Assembly (NCBI GenBank): GCA_965235115.1
Contig: OZ249436.1
Coordinates: forward strand, 56,978,001 to 57,042,000
Length of the DNA stretch: 64,000 bases
Direction: 5' to 3'
Source of the DNA: Laetmonice hystrix
Taxonomy: Eukaryota
Below the pieces are notes generated by a model. That model saw only the letters and a program-made list of their open reading frames with translations. It had not been told where the DNA came from and searched no databases. Every line of letters begins with the position of its first letter. Within the stretch, counting starts at the first letter, position 1. Below are positions 15,201 through 64,000 of this stretch, one piece after another. Position numbers and translations under genes: made by a program.

Positions 15201-18200
15201 GACCAGTTCGGTACCTGAGGGTACCCAGGGGGTACCCAGATGGTACTCAGGGGGTACCCCCAAAATGCTCACCTGGTCCTGTCCGGTACTCTGGTGGTAC
15301 TTCCCTTGTACCCCCCTAGCACCCCAGTTATTACAATAGCGGTTGCGTTCGCCAAAATTCGCAACCGCTATTGTAATAAAACTTTGTTCAAGGGCTACCG
15401 ACCAGACCGGGTACCTAAGGGTAGCCAGGGGGTACCCAGATGGTACTCAGGGGGTACCCCCAAAATGCTCACCTGGTCCTGTCCGGTACTCTGGTGGTAC
15501 TTCCCTGGTACCCCCCTAGCACCCCAGTTATTACAATAGCGGTTGCGTTCGCCAGAATTCGCAACCGCTATTGTAATAAAACTTTGTTCAAGGGCTACCG
15601 ACCAGTTCGGTACCTGAGGGTACCCAGGGGGTACCCAGATGGTACTCAGGGGGTACCCCCAAAATGCTCACCTGGTCCTGTCCGGTACTCTGGTGGTACT
15701 TCCCTGGTACCCCCCTAGCACCCCAGTTATTACAATAGCGGTTGCGTTCGCCAGAATTCGCAACCGCTATTGTAATAAAACTTTGTTCAAGGGCTACCGA
15801 CCAGATCGGTACCTAAGGGTACCCAGGGGGTACCCAGATGGTACTCAGGGGGTACCCCTAAAATGCTCACCTGGTCCTGTCCGGTACTCTGGTGGTACTT
15901 CCCTTGTACCCCCTAGCACCCCAGTTATTACAATAGCGGTTGCGTTCGCCAGAATTCGCAACCGCTATTGTAATAAAACTTTGTTCAAGGGCTACCGACC
16001 AGATCGGTACCTAAGGGTACCCAGGGGGTACCCAGATGGTACTCAGGGGGTACCCCCAAAATGCTCACCTGGTCCTGTCCGGTACTCCAGTAGTATTTCC
16101 CTGGTACCCCCCGGTTGGTACCCTCTGGGTACCCAGGGGGTACCCAGAGGGTACTCAGAGGGTACCCCAAAAATGCTCCCCTGGTCCTGTCCGGTACTCT
16201 AGTGGTACTTCCCTGGTACCCCCCTAGCACCCCAGTTATTACAATAGTGGGCGTTATTACATTAGCGGTTGTAACACGAATTCCATGCTCTTTTCTGTTG
16301 TTTTTTATGACATACATGTACATCATTTATGTTTATTTCTTTAGAAATTACTACACAGATTGATATAAAGTTGATTGATAGCAGATTGATTGATATATTT
16401 ATATATAGTTGATCGATAGCAGTAAGCTCTGTATCCATGTTGCAGGAGGACTTATAATGTTATGTTGTCACTGGACTTGTGTTGTGACGTTGCTTGTTTC
16501 ATCACCGTAGTAATAATAAGTCGCTTAATTGTGTTAGAACGGAAACAGCCGAACCACAGCACGTCTGCACAAATCTCTGCCACGTGTAGGAGCTGCATGA
16601 GGCTTAAATGGATTCCTGGGCCAAGCACTTGTGCGAAGTAAAACAACAGGTCAATAAGGGGCTCAGATGAACTTGGAACGCTACACTGGCGTATCCTCGC
16701 CTGACGAATATGCCTCGTGCGTTTTGTGAAATAAGGTCACATTCTTGAAAGTCGGCTTGTGGTGGCGTGAGCAACCGATTCTTGTGTCTTAGAAATAAAG
16801 CACACATAAAAAGTGCTGATTGTGGATATTTTTAACAGAAGGTTTGGGTATTGCATCATCTAGTTTTGTTGCTATGTTGTCATGTGTCAGCCGCAAGGAA
16901 TGCAACATGTTCCCGCGGCTCATGGAAATCATAGACAGAGGGAAACTAAGACCACATGCGGACAAAGTTTGGTGACATGAGAGCTCAGATAGTTGGGAGT
17001 TTTTGTGGCGAGGATCCTAGCCCTTTACATTAGCGGAGGCTGTTGGCTCGGATGGTACCAGATGGCGCATTGAGTGGCTGTATGTGTGAGATACGGTCCC
17101 AGGAAAAGGTGGCTGGCCAGCGCTAAATGAAGCAACGTCTGGCATCCACATGTTTGAATTATTGGACTAAAGGCGAACTTGTCACCCATGTATAGTTGTG
17201 TTCTCAAGAATCTTTAGGGGAATGTTGAAAAAGGGGCCACCGAGGGTACTTGTCTTCTTGAAAACATATGCCCCAGAAAATATATCGATTGTATAATTTT
17301 GATTACTGTGCATTTTTAAGGATGGTTTCTTAGAAAATTTTATGATACGATAAGTTCATGAATTTATAAGCATGAGCTCGTGACAGGTTTTTCTTTGTGA
17401 AATTCAGCCCGCCCTCATGCATTCAGGTATTTATATATCATGCCATCTAAAAACTGAAATAGTATAGCGTTGTGGTTCAGCTAACCTAAAGGGATCATTG
17501 TGACCTTTGGTGACCTTGCACCTGACATACTTGTTAGTACATGTACATAGTATGGTCAGGTCACTTATACCATTAAAACCACCTTTGTCAGGCTTTGACA
17601 CTGTTGAGCAGTTAACGTGTGGTAATTATACGCAGGTTGTCATTTTGCATATTAAATCGTTGACAGTCACAAAAGGCGTGGGTCATGATGTTCTCCGGAA
17701 GATCGGCTTGAGAGGATGTTGAGAGACTAGAATCTGGTACCACATCGTCTGCAAGAAAAATCTACTGCATAACCTGATCGTGGGTTATATTGAGTGGAGA
17801 GCGACTGACATTTTTTCATTGTTTAAGCAGGTTGCAAATTACAGGTTTCATTCTATTTCAGCTAGCCTTGGGACAAAATAGGTTTCAATATGTCTATGAA
17901 TGAAACTGAAAGCGTTCGGAGAATTGTACGATTGTGCAACTCTTGAAGAAGTAGGCACGCTGAATTTTTGTCAGAACCTCTTGTCCATTATCGAGCACAG
18001 AGATCGGCCTGGTTAGCTGATGCTTCTATCTATCTTCATTATGGACTGAATGCTTTTCAAAGCGCTGATTACCTTGGAATGGACCAGTTGGCGGCCAGCC
18101 ATCGCCTACACTGACATACACTTACACCCAAACTGTTTTCCTCATCGTTGGCCTTTTTTCCGAGCCTGCCGTGGAGGGTACACGGGGGTAGAGAGTCGTA

Positions 18201-42200: not shown

Positions 42201-45200
42201 GACCTCAGTTTAGAGTGTGTCATCATGAGAGGTAGTGAGTGGGACTCTATGTATGTTGTAGTTTGTCAAGGCTCATTGAAGTGGTATATTACTACCTCGC
42301 CAGTGACATTAGGGACTCGTGAGAGGATAATAAGGACCTTCTTGTTGAAGCATTGAAAGCCAGCAGGCCGTAGTGTGATATACTGTTACCTGGCGGGGAG
42401 TATTGTCATTAAATTACCAACTTATTCTAGGGTACAAACTAAAGAGAATGTACCTGGACGTCAAATCAATGGATCTTTGGTGGGTTCCCCCTCGTAAATA
42501 GTCCACGACCATCCAGGTGTCGGCATATCGTGTATATTGAAGTGGACTCGGAGTTTTGCTGAAAGGGGTAATTTAAAAAAACGGTATTATGCCATATACA
42601 CGTATTATGTTTTCACTTATTAGTTGGGCGGAGGTAGTTTGGTTATAAAAATGATGGGACGTTAAAACCTCGAAAAAAGCTCTTCTGCCACTCTACAGCC
42701 CTCTATAGTATCCAGGTTATAACGCTAAAACAAATTCGTAGATCAGTTGATACGACTGTTAGGATTTCGATAACCTCAAGTCAGGTACTCTGCCCATTCC
42801 GTCGTCTTTTAACGTTGGAACAGTGGCTGAGGTTTAACAGATGATTGATAATTGACAAGTGACGTTTGTCTTGTGACAGGGCTGTGGAAAATAACAAGTG
42901 ACGTTTGTCTTGTGACAGGTCTGTGGAAAATAACAAGTGACGTTTGTCTTGTGACAGGGCTGTGGTAATTAACAAGTGACGTTTGTCTTGTGACAGGGAT
43001 GTGGTAATTAACAAATGACGTTTGTCTTGTGACAGGGCTGTGGAAAATAACAAGTGACGTTTGTCTTGTAACAGGGCTGTGGAAAATAACAAGTGACGTT
43101 TGTCTTGTGACAGGGCTGTGGAAAATAACAAGTGACGTTTGTCTTGTAACAGGGCTGTGGAAAATAACAAGTGACGTTTGTCTTGTGACAGGGCTGTGGA
43201 AAATAACAAGTGACGTTTGTCTTGTAACAGGGCTGTGGAAAATAACAAGTGACGTTTGTCTTGTGACAGGGCTGTGGAATATAACAAGTGACGTTTGTCT
43301 TGTGACAGGGCTGTGGTAATTAAGAAGTGACGTTTGCCTTGTGACAGGGCTGTGATAACTAACAAATGACGTTTGTCTTGTGACAGGGATGTGGTAATTA
43401 ACAAACGACGTTTGTCTGTTGACAAGATTGTCGCAATTAACAAGTGACGTTTGTCTTGTGACAGGGCTGCCTTCCTCTGGTGCTGATGTTTGATATGAAG
43501 GAGGACGTGGACATTGACCAAGGTAGGATCGGCTTTATTCTGCACAGTCTGATCATACATATCTAAATCAATTCATTTCTTGTGCCTGATCATCGAACAG
43601 TAACTGTAAGCATTGATGTCAGTTAGAATTAGATCGATCTTCCTAACAAAATCAGCTAAGAACTAATTGGTTATAATTGTTCAGAACATTGGTCCTTTGA
43701 AATGCAGTTTGCTCTTGATAAAAGTATAAGAAGAAGGTAGATTAGGAGATAGTTAAAGGTTCCAGAAATTCCAATCTTGGATTCGCTGAAGCAAGAATCG
43801 CGGTGCACTGAGCAACGGGAGCACCATGGTAGAGACAGGCTGCGCAGAAGGACCATTTTCATAACCAGGCGGCCACCTTAAGAACTTTAAAATTACTCTA
43901 CTTGCCAAAGCATATTGGAAGGCCTACCCGATGTATAAAGGTCTGAGAGTGCATTACTCCCATGCTATGTCTTCAAAGTGTGGACATATTGCCATTCATT
44001 CAAGATTTTTTTCAAATTTTTGTTCAAGTTTGTTCCAGCATTGTAATTGTAGTGGTATTGTGCGTTTTGCTGCCCTCTCTTGTATTCGCTTCACCATTAG
44101 CCACAACATTCCAGTGGGTGACGTCAGAGATTTGATTTTTGTGTCCAACAGGCTGGATATGAGCACTCAAAGAGGACATGCGCCCTTAGATTTCTTTAAA
44201 GGAAACCACGTTATTAAGAAAGATTCCAGCTTAGAAATTTTACCTCCGAGATTTTCCTTTTGATAACACACTTTAAATCTATTGTTCAGAACAGACGCTG
44301 GGCTTCCAGGCCATTATAACGGAAAAGAAGTATACCATTTCAAAAGCCTGTTACAGTTATCTGATTCCTTTCTGATGGTCGGGTAACGGACACTTTGAGA
44401 TCATTTGGTCGTATTTCAATCTCAAAATGAGACTCCACACGCCGGTGGTAGTGGTTAGATATGCCAGCCCAGACAGGGAGGCCGCGTCGTCCACCAGATT
44501 AGTGCGGGAAAAACGCTTCATTTTGTGGTTACATATATATAATGATGATGGGTGGGTTCCTCAACCTGCGCTTAAAGGCTTCAGGTTTCCACTTCGATCG
44601 TATTGTGAAGGGTAACCATGCAGGTAGGCCGCGGCTGGAGTGAATGACTGGCATGCTGAGGCTGGGTGACCGAGTGCGAGGAAGGAGGGTGGGAGGGGAA
44701 CTGCTCAGGGGGCAGAGGAAGTTGTCCTTAGAGGTTCTTCATGAGCCCACTAAGTCTTGTCATTGTCCCCTCGCCCCCATGGAAGTCTGTCCTGTTCTGT
44801 ACATGTGAGGCCTCGTAGAGGTTTTTATATATTTGCTCAGGTGAGCTGTATTTATATTGGTAACAGGCACAGGTGTTAAAGTAAACCTGTTATTTGCCAG
44901 TGATGAGGTAGCTATAACGGAGTACCTGACTGCCCTCATCTAGAAACGCTACGTTATGCTTCAGGTGATAGAATTCTGAGAATCTGATACCTATGTTAGG
45001 TTTTAGTTTAGGACATTGCCTTATTAAAGGTTTATCATTGCAGTGGCGTAGCGTGCCTGAGTGTCGTAGGACAAGACTGATATTCTGATGGTTTCATGCT
45101 GTTTCCTTTGCTTTTTACAGCACGCATCAGCCAACTAATGGAACAACTTGATGTCTTCATTAGTGTGAAACCCAAACCAAAGCAACCCAGTAAAGTAAGT

Positions 45201-48200
45201 AGAGTAGTGAAAAATAGATGCAAATTACATCAGAGGAAGAGGCGCTACCTATCATCGTAAGAGGTGAAGCATGGCGCCTTTAGAGTCTCTGAATATTCTC
45301 GAATGTCTTGCAAGAAATAAATTACCGTAATGTAGGTTTCATATTTCAGTTTTTCTTTTAAACACAAAGGAATACACGCTGTGCATTCAGTTCTCAAGTG
45401 GTTTTAAAGAGAAATATTTCCTACCAGAACAGATTTATTTTATGTCTATTGTTATGTACCTTAACAAGTTCAGGAGTAAGGTATGAATTGCTTTTTTATT
45501 TACAGTCTGTGATAGTGAAGAGCATAGAACGTAATGCTGCCAACATGTACGAGGCACGGAGGCGGCTGCTAGGCCTGCTGAACGAACCTCAACCAGTGAT
45601 CAGCTCACCCACCTACGACTTGGCCATCACTAACTCTACCAACAGTCTGGGTCTAGCCGGTCTAGGTAAGCTCCAACAGTCTGGGTCTAGCTGGTCTAGG
45701 TAAGCTCCAACAGTCTGGGTCTGGCTGGTCTAGGTAAGCACCAACAGTCTGGATCTAGTCAGTCTAGGTAAGTTCCAACAGTCTGGGTCTAGCTGGTCTA
45801 GGTAAGCTCCAACAGTCTGGGTCTTGCTGGTCTAGGTAAGCACCAACAGTCTGGATCTAGTCAGTCTAGGTAAGCTCCAACAGTCTGGGTCTAGCTGGTC
45901 TAGGTAAGCTCCAACAGTCTGGGTCTGGCTGGTCTAGGTAAGCTCCAACAGTCTGGGTCTGGCTGGTCTAGGTAAGCACCAACAGTCTGGGTCTAGCCGG
46001 TCTAGGTAAGCTCCAACAGTCTGGGTCTAGCTGGTCTAGGTAAGCTCCAACAGTCTGGGTCTGGCTGGTCTAGGTAATCTCCGACAGTGTGGATCTTGTC
46101 AGTCTAGGTAAGTTCCAACAGTCTGGGTCTAGCTGGTCTAGGTAAGCTCCAACAGTCTGGGTCTGGCTGGTCTAGGTAAGCACCAACAGTCTGGATCTAG
46201 TCAGTCTAGGTAAGTTCCAACAGTCTGGGTCTAGCTGGTCTAGGTAAGCTCAAACAGTCTGGGTCTAGCTGGTCTAGGTAATCTCCGACAGTGTGGGTCT
46301 AGCTAGTCTAAGTAAGCTCCAACAGTATGGGTCTAGTTGGTCTAGCTAAGCTTATGGTCAGGGTACTTCATTTCCTCTTTTTATTTTGGCGCAAAGAGAG
46401 TACAAAATGTAATCAAAAGAAGTGAGTCGTATTATGTTGTCGGTAGTATTTTTATAGCACTCCCAATCATATATCTTTTTTTTCTAATAGTCCTGTCACT
46501 CTGTTATGTGTTCATAATATTTTAGAGAGGGAATATGTGTTGTTAATGTATTGGGTGTAGTCCTTTAAGTTTTGAATTTGAAATGAGCCATTGATTTCCT
46601 ACAAACCAGTCGTATAATAAAGTACGTGAACCAACAAAGAAGGCACCCATCCATTTTATATCCGTGGTTCTATGGATAGAGTCTGCAAGTCTCTTCCTAT
46701 ATTATAAAAAGGCAAAAGTTGTGTTGACAACGAACTCTGTGGGCATTCAGTCCACATGGCAACGTGTACAAACACACTGCTGTTATTTACACTGCCGTGT
46801 GCAGCTTTCAACAAATGACCTCCCGACATAGAGTAGTATAGATTCCAGCAAGCCTTTCATGAAGCATCTTTATTGCTTATTTTACCGATGAGTATTTGAC
46901 TGCTTTGGTCTCTCTTCTAGTTATTATGAAAATGTACAGTAGTATTTCTCACTGCTGCCCCCTATTGCAGGCCTTCTGAGTCACAACCTGTTGAATGTGA
47001 ATAGCAACTCGGTACTGTTGTTGAACGGAGCGCGGAGTCCGCTGGCCAGTCCTGGCAGCCCCGGCAGCAGTCCCTCCCCCCTCATCTCCACCGCAGGTCG
47101 GTATGAGGCTTCGGCCCTGGGCTTATAGTAATACTCCACCCCTACAACTTCATCTTGTTTCCATCCCTACAGCTGGCTGCTGTATACATTTTCCAAATGA
47201 AACTTAACTAAACTCTCAATTTTTCTCCTTCCTTGATGCGGCATGAATTTTCAAACATTTTAGATATACCGGGGTACATGTATTTAAGTCGATGTCTTGG
47301 TCTACCTTTTGAAGTTGTATAGTTTGTCCGAAGCTTTTAACCGTGAACTTTGTATAGAAGTCCTAAAAGATGCTGATAAAATATGTAAAGGCCAGGTATG
47401 TTAGTATGAGGCTCAGTCTACTATCCTCGATCTGTGTTTATCAGGCTGGTACCACGGCGACCACCCTTTAATCTATATAGGGACGTCTTCCCTATTTTGA
47501 GAGCGCAGAGCTACTATTAGTATTGGACACTGAGCCATTTTCCAAACAGATTCCCAATATTGACGTGGTTGGTCTATACAAATAGTGACCCATTGTGGAC
47601 GCCTGACAATGAGAGGCATGGTGTAGTCAGTATGTGGGAACGTTGTTTTCTTTTCCAGGTGTGTACAGTCCGTTGTTGGTGATGTCGGCGGCCACAGGCC
47701 TGTCTCTGCAGTCGCCGGCGTCGTACAGCCTACACACCCCGCCAGCAGGTCACACGGCCGGCGGGGGTGTTGGTGGGGGCCGGGTGATCACCAGCCAGAA
47801 CGGTCTCCACAAGGATCTGAACCAAAACACCGCCTACATCAGAATACCCACACCCTCAGACAGAGGTATATCACAGATTGTATATAGCCGACACCTATTG
47901 TCGTGATTCTCTGTAAACACGTACTCTCATAAACGCCCGTCCACCTGGTTCAGCAGAGAACTCAAGATACACAAAAATGAAAGTTTGATTTATAAGTAAA
48001 ATACCTCCTTACGCGGAGTTAATTCCAGTACACAATCATTTTCATTTAGAGTAGTTGCAATGGCTTCTCATTGGACGGCCAGAAATACTTACAACAAAAT
48101 AAAGTACATGTACATGTATGTGGAGGGTTCAGTCTGATAGCAGTACCGTTGTTGGTCACCAGGTGGCACGAGTGCGAGCGGCAGTGGCCCGGACAGTGTG

Positions 48201-51200
48201 GGCAGTAGTCCACCTTGCGGAAGTCCCATTGATCTACTCAACAAGACGCCATCTAGCGCATCTCAAAATAACACAGAAAGACAACTTGGTAAGTCAGCCT
48301 GCTCCCCGTAACAAAACATAAGCAGTCCAATCTACGTGTATATCAATATGGTAATCGAGAACAAGTTAACATTTACAGCCGACAGTTTCATAATCATGGA
48401 CGTTTTGTTTGTGTAGATGGGTCGACGATTTCATCCAACAACAGTTATGTTGAAGCAGTGCTGCAGCAGAACCCTGTGTCGCCGTGTAGTAGCATCCAGG
48501 ACATGGCTGAACTCCTTGCCAACATCAGCCCTAGTAACTCATTCAACCGTAGCGGCAGCACGAGATCGTCCCCATTCAATCAACCCACTTCTAGTTCAAC
48601 ATACAGTCAAGCCAAATCCAATTCAACGTATCAAGATGCATCATCTAGTTCCCCTTACGGCCACCACGTGTCGCCCAATTCTTCCTTCAACAAAGGAACC
48701 GCCTCGTCCTCGGCCTTCACCAGAGGTTCTTCCGGCTCGCCCTTTACCACTGCTAGTTCCAGTAGCTATCACCAGGTGTCGCCCAACACGTCGTTTAACA
48801 GGGGCTCATCTGGGTCCTCATATAATCCAGGTCCCACAGGGTCCTCATATAATCCAGTCCCGCCAGGGTCCTCGTATAATTCGGGTCCGTCCGGGTCCGC
48901 GTATAATCCAGGTCCCTCAGGGTCCTCATATAATTCAGGCCCCACAGGGTCCTCATATAATTCAGGTCCCACAGGGTCCTCATATAATTCGGGACCGTCA
49001 GGGTCCTCGTATAATTCGGGACCGTCAGGGTCCTCATATAATTCGGGACCGTCAGGGTCCTCGTATAATTCGGGACCGTCAGGGTCCTCATATAATTCGG
49101 GACCGCCAGGGTCCTCGTATAGTTCAGGACCGTCAGGGTCCTCGTATAGTTCAGGACCGTCATTGTCCTCATTCACACAAGGATCTCCAAGTTCATCGTT
49201 CAACAGAAGCAGTTCCGGCGGGTCACTGAGCCAGAAGTCGCCGAGTTCGTCGTTCAATGGCGGCAGTCATGGGTCATTGTTTGATCACGTGTCTCCCAAC
49301 ACGTCCTTTAGTCGCAGTTTGAGCGGTTCGTCGTTACTAAACCAAGGGTCGCCAAGCTCCTCCTTCAACAGAGGCACGTCAGGATCAGCATTTAATCGTG
49401 TACCCACGAGTTCTACCTTCAACCACTCGACGTCGCCGTCAACCTTCAGTCAGGACTCGAGCCATTCATTCAACCATGTCGGTTCAGGGTTCAGTCACGG
49501 TAACGTTATGATGCCAGGTTCTCCCAGCAAACAAAACACGCTACTAGAGGACGCGATCAGGAGCAGCCTCTTCCAGTACGTGTAGTCATGGCAGTAATAC
49601 GTAATCATTTACTGGCATTGTAAACGTTTGTCGTTAGAGAGTTAGTGAGGACACACACGTCACTCGATGATGTAAATTGACCATGTGGTGTCGAATTGTT
49701 GCTGACGAAATGTTCAGTAACAGTGCTGTTGCATTTTGTTTTTGTTAAAGTGATTGATAGTATCCTCGCATAAGTAACCTACTCCTTTGGATGTTTGAAA
49801 AAAGATGAATATTACTAGGGTTTTTTGTGGGGGCGGGTAGAACTAGAAGGTTGGCTATAGCACATTTAACCATATGGTATACATCTTTGTGATTAGAAAT
49901 GGCGAACGGAGGTCGTCGGAGTCAGGATGCGAGTCTGACGGATCGGATCACCGCGCGCCCGGAGCTAACCGCCCACCTCCTGGGCTGCAGCCACCCCCAG
50001 GTCTACAGCCTCCCCCTGGACTGAATCCACCCCCTGGTCTCAACCCCAACCCAGGACTGCCCCAGCCAGCCTCGGCCAACTCGCTCTCATTGTTTGAGGA
50101 CAATCTCTTCTCCGCATTTGACTATGAGCAGAAGAAATTGCTTGCCAATAAAGGTAGAGAATTCCCTATTTTTAATTAACAAATTTCGAAGACGTCTGAA
50201 AGTTTGATGGAGTGATAATTATATTTAATTGAGTATATTTGTTGATTTTTTTTCATATTTGTCCTACTTTTCCCACCTTGTAGCCATGCAGAAGAAACCA
50301 GTGGGTGAGTCGCGCATCCCCACTGATTACTGGTCAGGTATGGGTTTCTCCAAGTCTATGCCAGACCACGCCATTCGGGACAGCTTACTGACTGCCGGGG
50401 TGCCATACACAGAGCCAAGTATGGCCACCACGTATGAGGTGATTATAACAGTGTAAATCACTGAACTTTCTGATAGGTGTAAACATAGGTGTGTATAACA
50501 GAGGTAATATCCTCTCACCAATAACATGGTACACTGGTATAGTGATGAAGGCTCTCACTGTCGTGTTTTATTTATTATATGTATTGTATTTGACCTAACT
50601 GCAGAGTGCCAACGAGGTTGATCAAGACCCATGGAAGGACTCGCCCACTAATCATTCGCCCCAACACCGAGCGCCCATGAATGCCGCCCCAGGAGAGTAC
50701 CCAAGCATGAGGAGAAAAAGTAAGTCCACGTACCACTCCAATACTGGTGGCACTCTTGAAAGTGAAATAAGATTCGGNNNNNNNNNNNNNNNNNNNNNNN
50801 NNNNNNNNNNNNNNNNNNNNNNNNNNNNNNNNNNNNNNNNNNNNNNNNNNNNNNNNNNNNNNNNNNNNNNNNNNNNNNNNNNNNNNNNNNNNNNNNNNNN
50901 NNNNNNNNNNNNNNNNNNNNNNNNNNNNNNNNNNNNNNNNNNNNNNNNNNNNNNNNNNNNNNNNNNNNNNNNNNNAGCATTTTATATCAAGCCACCGGAT
51001 AAAAAAAACAGTGAGCTTACGGCTTTGACTACTATATAAGTTCTATGTCTTGGTCCAAAGTTTCACATTGTCTAGGTTAAGCGACGGTAACTTAGTTGGA
51101 GCACAAACCTTTGTACATGTAATATGTTTTCAGTAGGAGAGTTTGGTCTGAGTAACAGTAATCACATGGACAGTGCCTCGGTACCACCTAGCCAGTCGTA

Positions 51201-52004
51201 CAGCCCCAAAACCGACCTAGCTGAGCTGTTCAGTAAGCTGGGCTTGGGCAAATACACAGACCTCTTCCAGCAACAAGAGGTGAGTTAAAAAAGGCGCAAA
51301 CCTTCTTGTCGAAAATGTAATTGTCTAATTTAAAGATGGATTAAAGATTAAAGAAGGACCAACGGTAAAATTTACATCAAACTTTACTTGGTAATTATAC
51401 TTAGTCGTACTATAGCGTTTTGCTATTAACCAAGTCTTCACGTTTTAGCAACTCTTGTTGCTGTGTTGATCGGGTTGTTTTGGGTGAGTTTATGTTTGCC
51501 GCGGTGAACTCGGTATACGATGACTTGGATCGTTGATGAGGTGGGTTGTGATTATTTCAGATTGACATGGGCACATTCCTCACTCTGACTGATCAGGATC
51601 TGAAGGAGCTGGGTATCTCGACATTTGGTGCCCGACGAAAGATGTTACTTGCTATAGCAGGTGGGTGACATATCTGACCACTTTAACTAAATATAAAAAG
51701 GTATGTGCTCGATCAATTCATACATAGGCCTACACTTACATGTATTTACTGGTTAGGCCTACTGTTCTGGAAACGGGAGAAAGAATCTTTGAATTTGAAG
51801 CTCGTTTGGCTTTCCAGGCTCTACAGACTGTGTAAATCTGTTTATGAAATATAAGAAGGAACATTTGTTGTAGACCTTCACAAACGTCAGACGTTGCTGA
51901 ATGCTGCCCCCGGATCCAACAACCCATTCCGTGATAGCAACTCGGCCGCCGCTCCCAGCAACTGCCGACGTCAGGAGATCGTCAGCCAGAGCGGCAGGTG
52001 GTAG
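171..52004 (+). CDS. BICC1: Bicaudal C homolog (KH/KH-like domains + SAM domain RNA-binding protein), 20 coding exons in window, 5'-partial
   Basis: Spliced translation gives [35 protein letters not shown]...[44 protein letters not shown] (KH, GxxG)...[19 protein letters not shown]...[11 protein letters not shown]...[54 protein letters not shown] (SAM)...SQSGRW*. This closely resembles vertebrate BICC1 as I recall it. All introns are GT-AG with compatible phases. Confidence 0.97.
1300..1440 (-). mobile_element. SINE remnant (Meta/V-SINE-like central domain)
   Basis: Minus strand reads ...ctgtcagctacctgctgaaccgttggtggttttttctccgggtactcc...gtttcctcacc.... This resembles the GGTTTTCTCCGGGTACTCCGGTTTCCTCC core of invertebrate tRNA-SINEs, recognised from memory. 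Boundaries approximate. Confidence 0.4.
6051..6467. mobile_element. MITE with ~27-bp TIRs (TA-CCGTATT...), Tc1/mariner-pogo/Tc2-like
   Basis: Left end TACCGTATTCGACCTACTTAGTGTACA. Reverse complement of the right end is TACCGTATTCGACCTAATAAGTGTACA (2 mismatches). Inner inverted ctaataagcgtac motifs; TA at both ends. Confidence 0.75.
12145..12214 (+). CDS. BICC1: BicC coding exon (70 bp): [23 protein letters not shown]
   Basis: ttctcacag acceptor, gtgagt donor. Near-identical to the conserved BicC motif. Confidence 0.96.
13703..13769 (-). pseudogene. tRNA-derived sequence with Pol III A/B boxes (copy 1)
   Basis: Minus strand GTCTCAATAGCGGAGTGGGTAGC...TGGGTTCGAATCCCACCA. A box TAGCGGAGTGG, B box GGTTCGAATCC with an intact T-stem; no acceptor stem. 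Confidence 0.6.
14075..14141 (-). pseudogene. tRNA-derived sequence with Pol III A/B boxes (copy 2)
   Basis: Same cassette 372 bp downstream: TAGCTGAGTGG ... GGTTCGAATCC. Confidence 0.6.
15094..16035. repeat. ~199-bp tandem repeat (5 units), GGTACC-rich, each unit with a 20-bp perfect inverted repeat
   Basis: ccccagttattacaatagcgg starts at 15123, 15322, 15522, 15721 and 15919. Confidence 0.95.
33831..33910 (+). CDS. BICC1: BicC coding exon (80 bp): (D)[26 protein letters not shown]
   Basis: ctcttgcag acceptor, gtaagc donor. Phase 1 to 0; continues SKK-D-PHIKV. Confidence 0.95.
35440..35960 (-). mobile_element. Decayed non-LTR retrotransposon (CR1/L2-like) ORF2 3' fragment
   Basis: A minus-strand frame gives [20 protein letters not shown] ... 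LMSSVPLWN, resembling the xRRxxxRLxMxYKI...VxIP and S..PxWNxL tail of CR1/L2 RT proteins. Stops and frameshifts upstream. Boundaries approximate. Confidence 0.38.
36829..37106. repeat. 54-bp intronic minisatellite (~5 copies)
   Basis: gtgcatacattgggaaggattacaggtgtcagaccccacagagaaagcgtaaag at 36829, 36883, 36937, 36991 and 37045 (last copy diverged). Confidence 0.95.
38597..38755 (+). CDS. BICC1: BicC coding exon (159 bp): [27 protein letters not shown]...EKSNQ (KH)
   Basis: ttttgtag acceptor, gtcggt donor. KH GxxG loop IGKGG. Confidence 0.97.
39073..39126 (+). CDS. BICC1: BicC coding exon (54 bp): [18 protein letters not shown]
   Basis: ctttacag acceptor, gtaagt donor. Phase 0-0. Confidence 0.95.
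39246..39485 (+). CDS. BICC1: BicC coding exon (240 bp): [12 protein letters not shown]...[11 protein letters not shown]
   Basis: tttgcag acceptor, gttcgt donor. Matches ORF 39240..39506. Confidence 0.93.
39717..39929 (+). CDS. BICC1: BicC coding exon (213 bp): [28 protein letters not shown]...LARHQLI (KH)
   Basis: tttcag acceptor, gtaagt donor. KH IGRGG loop. Confidence 0.96.
42855..43469 (+). repeat. 39-bp tandem array (16 units) whose last unit is the BicC splice acceptor
   Basis: Acceptor-like CAG ends every 39 bp from 42879 to 43386 (14 copies), one degenerate unit at 43425, and the real acceptor ends at 43464. Confidence 0.97.
43465..43522 (+). CDS. BICC1: BicC coding exon (58 bp): [19 protein letters not shown]
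   Basis: tcttgtgacag acceptor (last unit of the 39-bp array), gtagga donor. Conserved [10 protein letters not shown] motif. Confidence 0.93.
45121..45194 (+). CDS. BICC1: BicC coding exon (74 bp): (A)[24 protein letters not shown]
   Basis: ctttttacag acceptor, gtaagt donor. Conserved [21 protein letters not shown]. Confidence 0.96.
45506..45665 (+). CDS. BICC1: BicC coding exon (160 bp): [24 protein letters not shown]...LGLAGL
   Basis: tttacag acceptor. The first GTAAG donor of the 34-bp array is the only donor that yields an open product with the next exon. Confidence 0.92.
45639..46352 (+). repeat. 34-bp tandem array (~21 units) whose first unit is the BicC exon end and splice donor
   Basis: ccaacagtctgggtctagctggtctag|gtaagct. 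GT every 34 bp from 45666 to 46312; the last unit has CT at 46346. Confidence 0.97.
46971..47096 (+). CDS. BICC1: BicC coding exon (126 bp): (G)[41 protein letters not shown]
   Basis: cctattgcag acceptor, gtcggt donor. Phase 1-1, open, Ser/Pro-rich linker like the BicC intervening sequence. Confidence 0.78.
47659..47865 (+). CDS. BICC1: BicC coding exon (207 bp): (G)[22 protein letters not shown]...IRIPTPSDR
   Basis: cttttccag acceptor, gtatat donor. Phase 1-1; lies in ORF 47634..47906. Confidence 0.75.
48163..48288 (+). CDS. BICC1: BicC coding exon (126 bp): (G)[41 protein letters not shown]
   Basis: gtcaccag acceptor, gtaagt donor. Phase 1-1, open frame. Confidence 0.75.
48417..49575 (+). 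CDS. BICC1: BicC large low-complexity coding exon (1159 bp), Ser/Gly/Asn/Pro-rich with 13 x 9-aa repeat
   Basis: tttgtgtag acceptor, gtacgt donor. Phase 1 to 2, matching the next exon (CA+A=Gln). The frame equals ORF 48458..49585. Repeat variation is largely synonymous (third positions). Confidence 0.8.
48812..49162 (+). repeat. 27-bp coding tandem repeat, 13 units (GSSYNSGPS)
   Basis: 351 bp = 13 x 27; consensus gggtcctcrtataattcgggaccgtca. Confidence 0.97.
49897..50153 (+). CDS. BICC1: BicC coding exon (257 bp): [22 protein letters not shown]...PPPGL repeats...[13 protein letters not shown]
   Basis: gtgattag acceptor, gtagag donor. Conserved (K/R)APG and [11 protein letters not shown] motifs. 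Confidence 0.92.
50284..50438 (+). CDS. BICC1: BicC coding exon (155 bp): (A)[26 protein letters not shown]...MATTYE
   Basis: accttgtag acceptor, gtgatt donor. Conserved WSGxGFSKSMP motif. Confidence 0.95.
50605..50719 (+). CDS. BICC1: BicC coding exon (115 bp): [14 protein letters not shown]...YPSMRRK
   Basis: aactgcag acceptor, gtaagt donor. Phase 0 to 1, compatible with both neighbours. Confidence 0.8.
50778..50975. other. Assembly gap (198 N) within a BicC intron
   Basis: Run of N. Confidence 1.
51134..51279 (+). CDS. BICC1: BicC coding exon (146 bp): (I)[12 protein letters not shown]...[22 protein letters not shown] (SAM N-half)
   Basis: gttttcag acceptor (tandem CAG-TAG), gtgagt donor. 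SAM motif. Confidence 0.96.
51561..51660 (+). CDS. BICC1: BicC coding exon (100 bp): [33 protein letters not shown] (SAM C-half)
   Basis: atttcag acceptor, gtgggt donor. Canonical SAM LKELGI...GARRK. Confidence 0.97.
51874..52004 (+). CDS. BICC1: BicC last coding exon: (D)[13 protein letters not shown]...EIVSQSGRW*
   Basis: tttgttgtag acceptor. Ends TGG TAG; the SGRW C-terminus is typical of BicC proteins. Confidence 0.92.
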
Positions 52005-52333
52005 GCCGCCTGGCACGCCGCCTGGTGGTAGGCTGCCTGGCACGCCGTCTTGTGGTAGGCCGTCTGGCACGCCGCCTGGTGGTAGGCCGCCTGGCACGCT
52101 GCCTAGTGGTAGGCCGCCTGGTGGTAGGCCGCCTGGTGGTAGGCTGCCTGGCACGCCGCCTGGTGGTAGGCTGCCTGGCACGCCGCCTAGTGGTAGGCCG
52201 CCTGGTGGTAGGCCGCCTGGTGGTAGGCTGCCTGGCACGCCGCCTGGTGGTAGGCTGCCTGGCACGCCGCCTGGTGGTAGGCCGCCTGGCACGCCGCCTG
52301 GTGGTAGGCCGCCTGGTGGCGCGCCGTCTGGTG
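51997..52333 (+). repeat. 27/15-bp GC-rich tandem array beginning at the BicC terminal codon and stop
   Basis: ggtggtaggccgcctggcacgccgcct (27 bp) and rgtggtaggccgcct (15 bp) units; 14 units contain TGGTAG. Confidence 0.96.
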
Positions 52334-52465: not shown

Positions 52466-52471
52466 AATAAA
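52466..52471 (+). terminator. Candidate polyadenylation signal (first AATAAA after the stop)
   Basis: AATAAA about 460 nt after the stop. Others occur at 53218 and in each 146-bp unit; the signal actually used cannot be determined. Confidence 0.25.
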
Positions 52472-53410: not shown

Positions 53411-53994
53411 TACATCCCTCATGGTAATAAATGTACCCGGTACATGCAGGTTATACAAGGTAAAGGAGAAGTAGAGTTCCCTGTGTTATAGAACATCCAC
53501 CTACGGTAAACCTGTCCAATGTCTACCAGTGATCAGTCTGAATCATACAATCAGTGTACATCCCTCATGGTAATAAATGTACCCGGTACATGCAGGTTAT
53601 ACAAGGTAAAGGAGAAATACAGTTCCCTGTGTTATAGAACATCCACCTACGGTAAACCTGTCCAATGTCTACCAGTGATCAGTCTGAATCACACAATCAG
53701 TGTACATCCCTCATGGTAATAAACGTACCCGGTACATGCAGGTTATACAAGGTAAAGGAGAAGTAGAGTTCCCTGTGTTATAGAACATCCACCTACGGTA
53801 AACCTGTCCAATGTCTACCAGTGATCAGTCTGAATCATACAATCAGTGTACATCCCTCATGGTAATAAACGTACCCGGTACATGCAGGTTATACAAGGTA
53901 AAGGAGAAGTAGAGTTCCCTGTGTTATAGAACATCCACCTACGGTAAACCTGTCCAATGTCTACCAGTGATCAGTCTGAATCATACAATCAGTG
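53411..53994. repeat. 146-bp tandem repeat, 4 near-identical copies, downstream of the BicC stop
   Basis: tacatccctcatggtaataaa at 53411, 53557, 53703 and 53849; 584 bp = 4 x 146. Confidence 0.97.
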
Positions 53995-56900
53995 GACAGT
54001 CCAGAAAAAGAATCACCCATGACTTACATACTGTGTCTGGAAACTTTACAGTCATGATCTGTAGGATTGAATGATTATAATGGTTCAGCAAATACCTTTG
54101 TCTTGGCTACAACAATGTTGTCAGACCACTCGTTGCAGAAGTTATTTTGTCAGTCATTTGCATTCCTAAGTTTTTAAGGACATTAGTTTAACCTGTTTGC
54201 AGCGTTCACCCCATCTGGTAATGGTGTCAGATCAGAGTGTAGCGAATATGGGGACCACTCCAATGCTTTCATATTGTGCAGGCACATATAATAAAGTCCC
54301 CAGGGTTTTCGTTGATTTGGACTGTTAACTGTTATGTAGCACCTGAATTATTATTATGTGATAACAGTAGAAACCTTTGTATTTCTGTGATTTTGTACAA
54401 GTGTTATAGAGAGTATCCTCCCGTGTGAAATACAAAGTGAAAACAAAGGGCAGAAGATTTGTGACTGTTTACATACTGCGTGAAGCAGCCGGTTTATCAT
54501 CTAGAGAAAAACAACATACAGGCGACAGGTGATCTTGTACGTTAGGACTCTGTTTTGTATGGAGTTGAATTTCACAAACTTCACACAGGATAATTAATGA
54601 ACTGGGAGTCATAGACACGGTACTTGAACAAAGCACTTGCCTTAAATTTTTAATGGTGTACATGTGTTCATGTACATGTTAGCTGACTCGCCATATCACT
54701 ATTGTGGGTTTCCGTAACGAACGTCTTTTGCAACATTGTTACCTTAAGTAATTTTAGAAATAGCTGAACTTTTGGACAAGCAAAATGCGTGAGGGATGGG
54801 CCAGCACCTCCCAGAGTAATCATTGTTTGTATCTTGTTTGTGCCTTAAATGGACTTCTGTACAGAAAGTCAGTATTCCGTGCCATATATTCTGTGTATTA
54901 GCCTTACTGAAAGTATCGATCATCCAAAACATGCAAAAAAAAAAGATGTCTTCATGACTTGATTATGTCTGGTGACGTCGAATATGGATAAAAGGGAGAA
55001 AAACGCAGTAGCATAATTACCGGTGGTACCCCAGGTATATACTGTACAGGTTTTGGTCAGCTGAACCCAAAGTAAATAATAAAGAGGAAGAAAACAATTG
55101 AAGAAAACTTGTTGGTCGGGTATATAATGATCATATATCAGGTTGAAGTATTTGCCTGCTTTGGTTCCTTAATGGTTTCCACTAGCGATGAATAAATATC
55201 ACCAGAGAGTGTAATATATTCTCTGATACCACCGCCACCATGTCTTGCTTAAGTAGGTAATGTAGGGCCAAGGTGTTGAGAAAGAAAATGTAACTGCGCC
55301 ACTGTGCATGAAAACACTATGATGTATATAAATATGAAACGAAAAGAAAACCATCATAGGCAGATTTGTATACTGATACTGTTAATATATAAACCAAAGT
55401 TTTCTGATGATGTCATGACCAAACAGGGTATGCTTCTATTGTGTCATTACTTGATGGGGCTTGAGCATCACAGACTTGAAGGCGCCCTGAATGGATTGCA
55501 TTTCTCTCCAGGATCGTTCACAATCCATCACCAATTATTTACAGGAATATAAAAATACTCCACTTTAAAATTATAGGAGAACTACCGGAAAAGACGACTC
55601 CGACCAACAAGCAGTACGTGGGTCAGTAAAATGTGAAAGCGATCAGTGAGGTACATTGTAATAGAAAATGTAGCAATCAAAAAGAGAGAATATGATGCTG
55701 AGTGAATCACTATGACAAGGGCTAATCATGGTGTGTCAGGATATCTCCGTTGATGAATCAATTATGGCCTGCTTTTTTATATTGTCACTGCAAAGTAACC
55801 TAGCACCTGTACTTGTTGGGTGATATTGTGGAGTATTTTGGTGCTGTAGTCAAGTCATTTTATAAGGATACTGTGCGTGATATGTAGTGACTGTATCGTG
55901 ACGCATCTCCTGATAGGGAGTGTGAAGGACGGTAGCTTTTGTTCGTTAGCATTACCGGGTTCCAGAACAATATTCCGCTAAGTGGGGTTTTTTAAAATAA
56001 GATATTCCGCCACAGTCCTTTTCGTAAAGAGAAACTGCAGCTTTAAATTGAAGATGGAAATTTGGAAGATCATGAGACTTGTTATGTAATGTCAGAAGTC
56101 GGGTCATTTTGTTGTGTTTCATTCTGAATGAGACAGTCTTCTGAATGTCAACATACCGGTAATCGCAGTTAGAATTGACGTTTTTCTTCAAAGTAGAATC
56201 ATTGATCTACTACGTGGGGCAAACAGGCATGCAGTGCCCGCCGGGGTATGTAGCTGGGTTCAGTGATGAGTGTGTGATTGCGGCCATGGATGTGCTTACC
56301 TATTTAATATCCCGGTCCTGTTTATTCTTGGGTCTTGAGTGTTATAATTGTTACCGACCTCACTGCGAGTTATCTTCATCTTTTGTACACAAGTGGATAA
56401 CGATATATTTCTTGATTCAGTGACTCGGAATGTATCGACGTGATAAGAGTTTGGTCATATGACAGGGGAGTTGTTGAAATCGAAGTTTTGGGATGTGGTT
56501 ATCAATGTTTTCAGTTAATTAAACCCTTCCAGCACGGTATGGTAACACCCAATGCCCCTCCCTCAGCACAAACCCGCACAGTGTGTGGATTTAAAAGATT
56601 ACAAATGGATTGTTGAATGTGGAACTCAGTTAGTTTATTCAAAATGTACATACGGTACCGTAATGGTATTTGTGTATACAGGTATAGTTAGGTCGAAACA
56701 GAGTGAAACGTTTTGAAATTCTCCTATTTTTGCTACATGGCAATATTACATAGGTGTGGTCACCTACACAAGTCACATTTATTCTATATTGGTCAAAATC
56801 TGGTACAGTGTATCAATTTGTGATTGATATTGCCTCAACTACATAATCTTTCAGTGCATTTCAACTTGTTCATGGGCTTCTTGACACCAGGCCAGATAAC

Positions 56901-60577: not shown

Positions 60578-63500
60578 AGTGCTCTCTTTTCTATTAGTGA
60601 ACGTACGAGACGATACATGTAGGGAGCTCTACCTCTATTGTTTGCTCTAGCCTAAGGGCAGTCAATATATATAGGGCGTCCTCACTCTAGTGTTTGCTTC
60701 AGCCAATACATGTAGAGAGCTCCCACTGTAGTGTTTGCTCGAGTATCAGGCCAGTCAATATATGTAGGGAACCCTCACGGTAGTGTTTCCTCCAACCGAA
60801 GGGCAGTCAATACATGTAGGGAGCCCTCACTGTGGTGTTTGCTCCAGTCTAAAGCCATCCAATACATGTAGAGAGCCGTCACTGTAGTGTTTGCTCGAGT
60901 ATAAGGCCAGTCAGTCCATGTGGGCAGCCCTCACTGTAGTGTTTGTTCAAGTCTAAGTTCAGTCAATACATGTTGAGAGCCCTCACTGTAGTGTTTGCTG
61001 AGTGCTCTCTTTTCTATGAGCAAACCTGCTGTTTGCTCAAGTATAAGGCTAGACAGTACATGTAGGGAGTCCTCAATGTAGTGTTTGCTTCAGTCTAAGC
61101 TCAGTCAATACATGTAGAGTGCCCTCACTGTAGTGTTTGCTCGTGTATCAGACCAGTCAATCCATGTAGGGAGCCCCCACTGTAGTGTTCGCTCCAGTGT
61201 GATGCTAGCCAATACATGTACGTGGCCCTCACTGTAGTGTTTGCTCCAGTCTAAGGCCAACCAATACATGTGGGTAGGCCTCACTGTAGTGTTTGCTCGA
61301 GCATAAGGCCAGTAAGTCCATGTGGGCAGCCCTCACTGTAGTGTTTGTTCAAGTCTAAGTTCAGTCAATACATGTTGAGAGCCCTCACTGTAGTGTTTGC
61401 TGAGTGCTCTCTTTTCTATGAGCGAACGTACGAGACCAATACTATGTAAACATTCCAGTAGCGAATTACAATACCAGATATGCGTAAACATTGCAATAAT
61501 GACCTAATATTATGTAAAACAAATGTATTTAGCGTTTTAAATCATACAATATCAGAAGCAGCACCTCCGACTGCACTGCCATCTTCCGGCTTCCAATGGA
61601 ATCACCAGGGCGCGTATACCTGACCGGGCCGCTGGCCACTGCCACCTTCCGGCTTCCAAAGGAATCACCACGTATACCGGGCCGCGGGCTGCCGCGGGCA
61701 CCTGCTGTTTGCTCAAGTATAAGGCTAGACAGTACATGTAGGGAGTCTTCACTGTAGTGTTTGCTTCAGTCTAAGCTCAGTCAATACATGTAGAATGCCT
61801 TCACTGTAGTGTTTGCTCGTGTATCAGGCCAGTCAATCCATGTAGGGAGCCCTCACTGTAGTGTTCGCTCCAGTGTGATGCCAGCCAATACATGTTCGTC
61901 GCCCTCACTGCAGTGTTTGCTCCAGTCTAAGGCCAACCAATACATGGGGGTAGGCCTCACTGTAGTGTTTGCTCGAGTATAAGGCCAGTCAGTCCATGTG
62001 GGCAGCCCTCACTGTAGTGTTTGTTCAATCCTAAGTTCAGTCAATACATGTTGAGAGCCCTCACTGTAGTGTTTGCTGAGTGCTCTCTTTTCTATGAGCG
62101 AACGTACGCGACCAATACTATGTAAACATTCCAGTAGCGAATTACAATACCAGATATGCGTAAACATTGCAATAATGACCTAATATTATGTAAAACAAAT
62201 GTATTTAGCGTTTTAAATCATACAATATCAGAAACCGCACCTCCGACTGCACTGCCATCTTCCGGCTTCCAATGGAATCACCAGGGCGCGTATACCTGAC
62301 CGGGCCGCTGGCCACTGCCACCTTCCGGCTTCCAAAGGAATCACCACGTATACCGGGCCGGGCTGCCGCGGGCACCTGCTGTTTGCTCAAGTATAAGGCT
62401 AGACAGTACATGTAGGGAGTCCTCAATGTAGTGTTTGCTTCAGTCTAAGCTCAGTCAATACATGTAGAGTGCCCTCACTGTAGTGTTTGCTCGTGTATCA
62501 GACCAGTCAATCCATGTAGGGAGCCCTCACTGTAGTGTTCGCTCCAGTGTGATGCCAGCCAATACATGTACGTGGCCCTCACTGTAGTGTTTGCTCCAGT
62601 CTAAGGCCAACCAATACATGTGGGTAGGCCTCACTGTAGTGTTTGCTCGAGCATAAGGCCAGTAAGTCCATGTGGGCAGCCCTCACTGTAGTGTTTGTTC
62701 AATCCTAAGTTCAGTCAATACATGTTGAGAGCCCTCACTGTAGTGTTTGCTGAGTGCTCTCTTTTCTATGAGCGAACGTACGAGACCAATACTATGTAAA
62801 CATTCCAGTAGCGAATTACAATACCAGATATGCGTAAACATTGCAATAATGACCTAATATTATGTAAAACAAATGTATTTAGCGTTTTAAATCATACAAT
62901 ATCAGAAACAGCACCTCTGACTGCACTGCCATCTTTCGGCTTCCAATGGAATCACCAGGGCGCGTATACCTGACCGGGCCGCTGGCCACTGCCACCTTCC
63001 GGCTTCCAAAGGAATCACCACGTATACCGGGCCGCGGGCTGCCGCGGGCACCTGCTGTTTGCTCAAGTATAAGGCTAGACAGTACATGTAGGGAGTCTTC
63101 ACTGTAGTGTTTGCTTCAGTCTAAGCTCAGTCAATACATGTAGAATGCCTTCACTGTAGTGTTTGCTCGTGTATCAGGCCAGTCAATCCATGTAGGGAGC
63201 CCTCACTGTAGTGTTCGCTCCAGTGTGATGCCAGCCAATACATGTTCGTCGCCCTCACTGCAGTGTTTGCTCCAGTCTAAGGCCAACCAATACATGGGGG
63301 TAGGCCTCACTGTAGTGTTTGCTCGAGTATAAGGCCAGTCAGTCCATGTGGGCAGCCCTCACTGTAGTGTTTGTTCAATCCTAAGTTCAGTCAATACATG
63401 TTGAGAGCCCTCACTGTAGTGTTTGCTGAGTGCTTTCTTTTCTATGAGCGAACGTACGAGACCAATACTATGTAAACATTCCAGTAGCGAATTACAATAC

Positions 63501-64000
63501 CAGATATGCGTAAACATTGCAATAATGACCTAATATTATGTAAAACAAATGTATTTAGCGTTTTAAATCATACAATATCAGAAACAGCACCTCCGACTGC
63601 ACTGCCATCTTCCGGCTTCCAATGGAATCACCAGGGCGCGTATACCTGACCGGGCCGCTGGCCACTGCCACCTTCCGGCTTCCAAAGGAATCACCACGTA
63701 TACCGGGCCGCGGGCTGCCGCGGGCACCTGCTGTTTGCTCAAGTATAAGGCTAGACAGTACATGTAGGGAGTCTTCACTGTAGTGTTTGCTTCAGTCTAA
63801 GCTCAGTCAATACATGTAGAATGCCTTCACTGTAGTGTTTGCTCGTGTATCAGGCCAGTCAATCCATGTAGGGAGCCCTCACTGTAGTGTTCGCTCCAGT
63901 GTGATGCCAGCCAATACATGTACGTGGCCCTCACTGCAGTGTTTGCTCCAGTCTAAGGCCAACCAATACATGGGGGTAGGCCTCACTGTAGTGTTTGCTC
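60578..64000. repeat. Hierarchical satellite: 52-bp subunits within ~676-bp higher-order units; continues past the window end
   Basis: cactgtagtg at exact 52-bp spacing (61750, 61802, 61854, 61906, 61958, 62010, 62062). HOR junction gggcacctgctg at 61696, 62370, 63046 and 63722. Confidence 0.97.

Follow-up and report, generated by a model that had tools for sequence, protein, structure and literature searches.

The 64-kb window analysed here (64,000 nucleotides, positions 56,978,001 to 57,042,000 of contig OZ249436.1 in the Laetmonice hystrix assembly GCA_965235115.1; coordinates below are counted from its first letter) contains most of a Bicaudal-C (BicC/BICC1) gene on the + strand, in which three tandem arrays of unrelated sequence each straddle the edge of a coding exon or of the coding sequence (CDS). 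The exon model was obtained by tblastn with orthologues that had been retrieved by exon search, and splice sites were placed manually. It comprises 18 exons from 12145 to 52004 and encodes one uninterrupted open reading frame (ORF) of 1167 amino acids, which aligns with BicC orthologues and ends in ...IVSQSGRW directly before the stop codon. Over the KH region, identity to the BicC proteins of scallop, amphioxus and Argonauta is 71–75% (tblastn, blastp), and over the full length the scallop protein is the best match by bit score, which indicates a host that is probably a lophotrochozoan. The gene possesses the KH domains, SAM exons that align with those of the orthologues, and the conserved C-terminal tryptophan (...SGRW and stop). 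The orthologues themselves carry the Pfam domains KH_BICC1 and SAM_1. Because all of them end in tryptophan (SGRW, SARW, SGHW and similar), the TAG at 52002–52004 is read as the ancestral BicC stop. With at least 1167 amino acids the model exceeds the orthologues in length (about 800–1000 amino acids), in part because of a coding minisatellite in exon 12.

Five exons of the model, all on the + strand, are of particular relevance. Exon 7 (43465–43522) follows array 1, exon 9 (45506–45665, ending TNSLGLAGL) leads into array 2, and exon 18, the last one (51874–52004, DLHKRQ...IVSQSGRW), runs into array 3, while exon 12 (48417–49575) and exon 13 (49897–50153) house in-frame coding repeats of 27 and 18 bp, respectively. 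The donor of exon 6 lies at 39929 and the acceptor of exon 10 at 46971. A gap of Ns at 50778–50975 falls inside intron 15 (50720–51133). A hidden exon within this gap was rejected, since exon 15 ends and exon 16 begins in phase 1, and the junction from ...PSMRRK aligns with the orthologue residues complete and continuous. The gap touches none of the three arrays and lies more than 1 kb from them; being intronic and distant, it is irrelevant to the finding. An antisense gene in the region was likewise rejected, the minus-strand ORFs being repeat artefacts, and comparison of the region with Rfam for structured RNA gave no family match.

Three tandem arrays at exon boundaries of BicC

Array 1 is a 39-bp minisatellite of 15.8 copies at 42855–43469 on the + strand (Tandem Repeats Finder, TRF; 92% matches). 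It extends 5 nt into exon 7, and hence the splice acceptor is repeated with it. Each unit joins the 3' end of intron 6, comprising a branch-like GTGAC, a pyrimidine tract and ACAG, to GGCTG, the first five nucleotides of exon 7. The authentic acceptor AG (43463–43464) lies within the final partial unit, and upstream of it 14 decoy acceptors are intact (TTGTCTTGT[G/A]ACAG with the junction before the next G), while one is mutated (ACAA). Each decoy acceptor is predicted to open the exon with GCG(K/N/I) and then to meet a stop (TAA, codon 5). The central units are homogenised to the consensus, while divergence is greatest in the three full units closest to the exon, a pattern that suggests unequal exchange.

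Array 2 is a 34-bp minisatellite of 21 copies at 45639–46352 on the + strand (TRF, 88% matches). It takes in the final 27 nt of exon 9 (TNSLGLAGL), which with the following GTAAGCT make up its first unit, so that the authentic donor GT (45666–45667) belongs to unit 1. There are 16 decoy donors downstream (TAG followed across the junction by GTAAG(C/T)), each with at least 7/9 consensus positions, which makes 17 donor-like sites with the authentic one. Since each extra unit adds 34 nt, use of a decoy would shift the frame or lead into a TAA. An in-frame product of decoy use was therefore rejected for both arrays, every decoy of array 1 or array 2 meeting a stop or shifting the frame. Higher-order periods of 102 bp and 340 bp are superimposed on array 2 and suggest unequal exchange, of which such periods are typical.

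Array 3 occupies 51997–52333 on the + strand, where TRF and unit reading define 14 units, each 27 or 15 bp long (GGTGGTAGGCCGCCT[GGCACGCCGCCT]). Its first 5 nt precede the stop that follows the conserved ...SGRW. Both unit lengths are multiples of three, and TAG therefore stands in the CDS frame in all 14 units. The first AATAAA occurs at 52466, and the array thus makes up most of a short 3' untranslated region (3'UTR). Array 3 represents the same type of event at the boundary between CDS and 3'UTR; it is an analogue only of the other two, as it does not lie at a splice junction.

Searches across the 627-Mb, 35-contig genome returned no match for arrays 1 and 2 besides the arrays themselves, and this uniqueness marks them as local in origin. 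For array 3, only low-complexity matches of 67–72% were found elsewhere. A dispersed-repeat or transposon origin of the three arrays was rejected on the basis of these searches. The original prediction, which placed three sequence-unrelated, boundary-straddling arrays (39, 34 and 27/15 bp) within 9.5 kb of BicC and read them as amplifications of an acceptor, a donor and a stop, is borne out in both respects: TRF and the spliced model agree on the arrays, and array 1 covers 5 nt of exon 7, array 2 covers 27 nt of exon 9 and array 3 starts 5 nt ahead of the stop. The coding arrays of exons 12 and 13, which TRF finds in the same 9.5 kb, were absent from its list of arrays.

It had further stressed that each array is polarised, with the functional copy at the exon-proximal end. 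This description holds, but it is not evidence for a particular process, since the polarity follows from the geometry of tandem duplication. When an intron tail is duplicated together with an exon head, only the last copy runs on into the exon, and the last acceptor is left intact. When an exon tail is duplicated together with an intron head, only the first copy is preceded by the exon, and the first donor is left intact. At a stop codon the polarity is uninformative, because translation by definition goes no further than the first in-frame stop. Every boundary-spanning array in a gene that still works has to show this polarity.

That the arrays or their lengths were mis-assembled is hardly credible. 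An assembly gap lies nearby, and Logan contigs stop about 30 nt inside arrays 1 and 2, so that no contig spans the interior of either array. Nevertheless, all four edges of these two arrays are crossed from unique sequence by contigs of three runs, the repeat k-mers reach a depth several-fold above that of the flanks, and the units carry ordered variants and higher-order structure. The contigs are assembled from DNA, and the runs are probably of the assembled individual, so that this support is not independent of the assembly. Run searches turned up four runs, all of a single sample and none recorded as RNA. Across the 4 kb of 42700–46700, the contigs of the three main runs (X1–X3, one sample) differ in the allele chosen at about 20 sites, which fits roughly 0.5% heterozygosity.

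Array density, chance expectation and unselected controls

The number of boundary-spanning arrays was compared with a null model in which a seed unit is placed at random in the gene, each array being collapsed to one unit. With the 7 arrays and 36 boundaries of BicC, this simulation gave a mean of 0.29–0.34 boundary-spanning arrays and a probability of 0.0015–0.0024 for three or more. In 264 kb of the genome, 75 arrays were counted, with 13.7% coverage. An independent density sample was taken from 200 kb of the genome, made up of 20 ten-kb regions around protein-kinase (Pkinase) exons. These regions contained 60 arrays, or 0.30 per kb, which cover 15% of the sequence and have a median unit of 34 bp. 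From the kinase-region density, the spanning probability per junction is about 0.009–0.011, and for a gene with 36 boundaries the probability is about 0.3 for at least one such array and 0.004–0.008 for three or more. Given about 10^4 windows or about 2x10^4 genes, one would thus expect this genome to contain dozens of genes hit by three such arrays, and single cases in the thousands.

The three boundary arrays of BicC are consequently above chance nominally, and no longer so once the genes or windows looked at are counted. The enrichment over boundary targets that had been suspected in the original prediction stands in the nominal sense (P of 0.0015–0.008) and disappears with that count, dozens of such genes being expected. 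The null hypothesis set out there, in which repeats arise at random and boundary-spanning ones survive, accounts for the count at the array density of this genome. The meeting of three arrays in one gene is probably owed to a genome saturated with minisatellites and to the high exon density of this part of BicC, and not to a targeting of boundaries.

An alternative, put forward in the original prediction, is that a mutational process tied to transcription or splicing, such as slippage or repair at exon ends or at low-complexity signals, seeds duplications preferentially at boundaries. Several observations are in its favour, namely the nominal probability for BicC (0.002–0.008), the contact of 5 of the 7 arrays of the gene with exons, and the presence of short internal direct repeats, on which the duplications may have been seeded, in the units of all three arrays. 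BicC was, however, picked for being striking, and loci not selected for repeats provide a fairer comparison. Among 28 internal Pkinase exon junctions, none was spanned by an array, against 0.3 expected. The closest arrays at the kinase loci start 42 nt into an intron (locus L024) or leave more than 100 nt between their end and the acceptor that follows (locus L019).

The BicC orthologue of Lymnaea stagnalis, a gastropod mollusc, provided a second comparison (CAL1537407.1; GCA_964033795.1, CAXITT010000261.1:377524-457665, locus L036). Herein, 47% of 78 kb lies in tandem arrays (72 arrays, 0.9 per kb), and 33 boundaries were defined by exact spliced mapping of the species' own protein. The overlap with a boundary amounts to at least 5 nt in three arrays and to 2 nt in one more, compared with 1.8–2.2 boundary-spanning arrays expected (P=0.28 and P=0.18). 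The ratio of observed to expected, about 1.6–1.8, leans towards a boundary-targeting process, and yet these values fit the uniform-seed null, as do the kinase junctions. In the coordinates of that locus, the arrays concerned lie at 61753–62023, 62195–62689, 62807–63388 and 69186–69835. They affect the donor of the exon 5 orthologue (the 2-nt overlap), both the acceptor and the donor of the exon 6 orthologue, and the donor of the exon that encodes residues 507–560. These are other junctions than the ones that arrays overlap in the present gene, and the BicC locus itself is therefore not predisposed. BicC in three array-poor genomes (amphioxus and the loci L038 and L039) contained 1–3 arrays, none at a boundary, which are too few to inform. 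Pooled over the unbiased controls, 3 boundary-spanning arrays were observed against about 2.1 expected, which fits the neutral null.

Furthermore, donor motifs within arrays were counted genome-wide. Triplets of the consensus donor MAGGTRAGT at a spacing of 10–40 nt numbered 823, compared with 669 for the reversed control (1.23), and single MAGGTRAGT sites numbered 24,378 compared with 22,533 (1.08), which leaves a ratio of ratios of about 1.1. Consensus donors in arrays are therefore not clearly above the reversed control given this baseline, although the test is a weak one, because single sites exceed the reversed motif by only about 8%, so that not many of them can be real donors. In addition, a handful of large satellite families account for most of the motif counts. 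With kinase junctions and Lymnaea near the prediction from density, and with consensus donors not clearly over-represented in arrays, a process that targets boundaries receives no support from these data, and we regard it as rather unlikely.

Origin and persistence of the arrays, with other repeats of the window

The arrays are probably best regarded as tolerated boundary-spanning minisatellites, which would have arisen by slippage duplication, expanded by unequal exchange and been kept since a junction stayed intact. In the proposed sequence of events, replication slippage on short direct repeats inside a segment that happened to include the exon boundary would have produced a first tandem duplication. 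Such repeats are present in all three units, as GGTCTAGCC/GGTCTAGGT coding GLAGLG, as GCCGCCTGG in array 3, and as GTGAC...GTGAC in array 1. The duplication may then have expanded into the neighbouring, neutral non-coding DNA through unequal exchange. The extra copies, lying in an intron or in the 3'UTR, would be ignored, with the first donor, the last acceptor and the first stop being used; at worst, the decoys would yield a minority of transcripts with premature stops. The arrays could thus persist because the exon-proximal copy keeps one junction intact.

Several points weigh against this account. The probability for BicC taken alone is small (0.002–0.008, nominally), and the pooled controls rule out only an enrichment above about 4-fold. 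Triplets of the shorter donor motif AGGTAAG occur at 2.3 times the reversed control. This excess was set aside because a few large satellite families dominate the counts, and the value comes without a single-site baseline. Three decoy donors of array 2 fit the consensus better than the authentic donor does. Moreover, the silence of the decoy sites is presumed for BicC by analogy with the genes compared below.

Other repeats of the gene lie within its coding sequence. In exon 12, an in-frame 27-bp minisatellite at 48812–49172 on the + strand (TRF) encodes 13 copies of GSSYN[SP]GP[ST]. It sits in the serine-rich linker between the KH and SAM regions, to which it adds about 13 copies; neither the sequences of the orthologues nor the tblastn alignments showed a counterpart of it. 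In exon 13, an in-frame 18-bp array at 49973–50059 on the + strand (TRF) encodes PPPGLQ/N; at this position the amphioxus BicC has a ERERELEREREK stretch and other orthologues have a short ERKN/ERKK motif.

Outside the exons, about 130 bp of intron 7 (43772–43905) show a contig depth of about 10–25 times that of the flanks, with many loose ends in all runs, and look like a dispersed repeat or an element resembling a short interspersed nuclear element (SINE). The 21.6-kb intron between model exons 1 and 2 contains a complex GGTACC-rich array at 14906–16224, in which 199-bp units occur five times with nested 11/22-bp and 112-bp repeats. A 146-bp array of four copies, with an AATAAA in each unit, lies 1.4 kb 3' of the BicC stop (53411–53998). 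From 60613 to the window end at 64000, 52-bp arrays are organised into a higher-order repeat with a period of 676 bp.

Beyond the window, about half of the first 100 genomic matches listed for the perfect donor MAGGTRAGT (contig C1, 0.13–2.86 Mb) fall inside tandem arrays, with examples at C1:250437, 2046032 and 2320168. In this genome, motifs that resemble splice sites are for the most part carried by repeats, a hazard for gene prediction. Where such arrays abound, perfect decoy splice sites and in-frame stops repeated in tandem will mislead both gene prediction and the calling of variant effects.

Known boundary-spanning repeats and the fate of decoy sites

Tandem repeats that span exon boundaries have already been described. 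They were named mirages in the amphioxus Adh3 gene (Canestro et al., 2002, as cited in PMC3087553 and PMC3902484), and later examples comprise the globins BflGb6 and BflGb9, PGBD5 and troponin C (PMC3087553, PMC3902484). Amphioxus mirages are found at 5' and 3' boundaries, have units of 10–160 bp and repeat the AG or the GT; their centres are homogenised and their edge units diverged, haplotypes differ in the length of the array, and splicing is normal by reverse transcription PCR (PMC3087553, PMC3902484). Arrays 1 and 2 resemble them closely: both are minisatellite-like in unit size, span a boundary with their terminal unit, are of local origin, repeat the AG or the GT and together represent both kinds of boundary, and array 1 likewise has a homogenised centre and diverged exon-side units. 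They differ in their host, which is not a cephalochordate and whose BicC is closest over its full length to that of a bivalve, in the presence of array 3 across the stop and 3'UTR, and in being known from the genome sequence alone.

In human genes, too, the fate of the additional sites has been followed. The 37-bp variable number of tandem repeats (VNTR) in intron 7 of F7 has a first monomer made of 4 nt of exon and 33 nt of intron, and occurs in 5–9 copies (PMC1557585). Only the most upstream of its identical donors is used. Those further downstream could function yet stay silent, as the site is chosen by scanning from 5' to 3' and the first one is taken (PMC1557585). Array 2 is built alike, with 27 nt of exon and 7 nt of intron in its 34-bp unit. 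Unlike the F7 repeat, for which the use of the first donor has been proven experimentally, it has 17 donor-like sites, and these are read from sequence. For the boundary minisatellites of LMNB2 and PDGF, decoys are silent as in F7, according to the work cited in PMC1557585. In IFI6 (6-16) and in the 31-bp VNTR of CBS, the first two decoys are used as well, and the CBS VNTR has been associated with enzyme activity (both as cited in PMC1557585). Array 2 shares with these four genes the repetition of donors after an exon.

The use of decoys in IFI6 and CBS is the known form of an idea that the original prediction had offered for BicC, namely that the arrays act as VNTR dosage rheostats, longer alleles diverting BicC pre-mRNA to decoys and thereby into nonsense-mediated decay (NMD) or into products limited to the KH region. 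Premature stops are indeed predicted for every decoy of arrays 1 and 2, the decoy donors match the consensus as well as the authentic donor or better, and the use of the first one or two decoys in IFI6 and CBS, together with the association of the CBS VNTR with activity (cited in PMC1557585), provides a precedent. Decoys are silent, however, in F7, LMNB2, PDGF, amphioxus Adh3 and the globins, as far as PMC1557585 and PMC3087553 report or cite these cases. The arrays are not conserved either, since BicC in amphioxus and at L038 and L039 is almost free of arrays and the Lymnaea arrays lie at other junctions, and one function shared by three unrelated arrays is unparsimonious in a genome of which 14–15% is minisatellite. 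Altogether, a rheostat role for the BicC arrays appears very unlikely.

It is distinctly unlikely, too, that in this repeat-saturated lineage exon boundaries, or the low-complexity sequence at them, are hotspots of minisatellite birth, with boundary arrays enriched several-fold genome-wide and some of them, perhaps the donor and acceptor arrays of BicC, leaking into length-dependent decoy splicing and dosage. If a genome-wide excess or the use of decoys did prove true, the arrays would provide a natural system for the choice of splice sites among identical sites and would bear on the gain of introns by duplication of junctions.

As tolerated repeats, the reading preferred here, the BicC arrays add three examples in a new host to a class that is already known, and array 3 is an unusual member of this class in that it spans a stop codon. 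With the present genome and that of Lymnaea stagnalis, there are at least two minisatellite-rich genomes outside the chordates in which boundary arrays are frequent. The Lymnaea gene is a counterpart in belonging to the same family, being rich in arrays and carrying three to four that span boundaries; it differs from the gene described here in the junctions that are hit and in the sequences of the units, which are unrelated.

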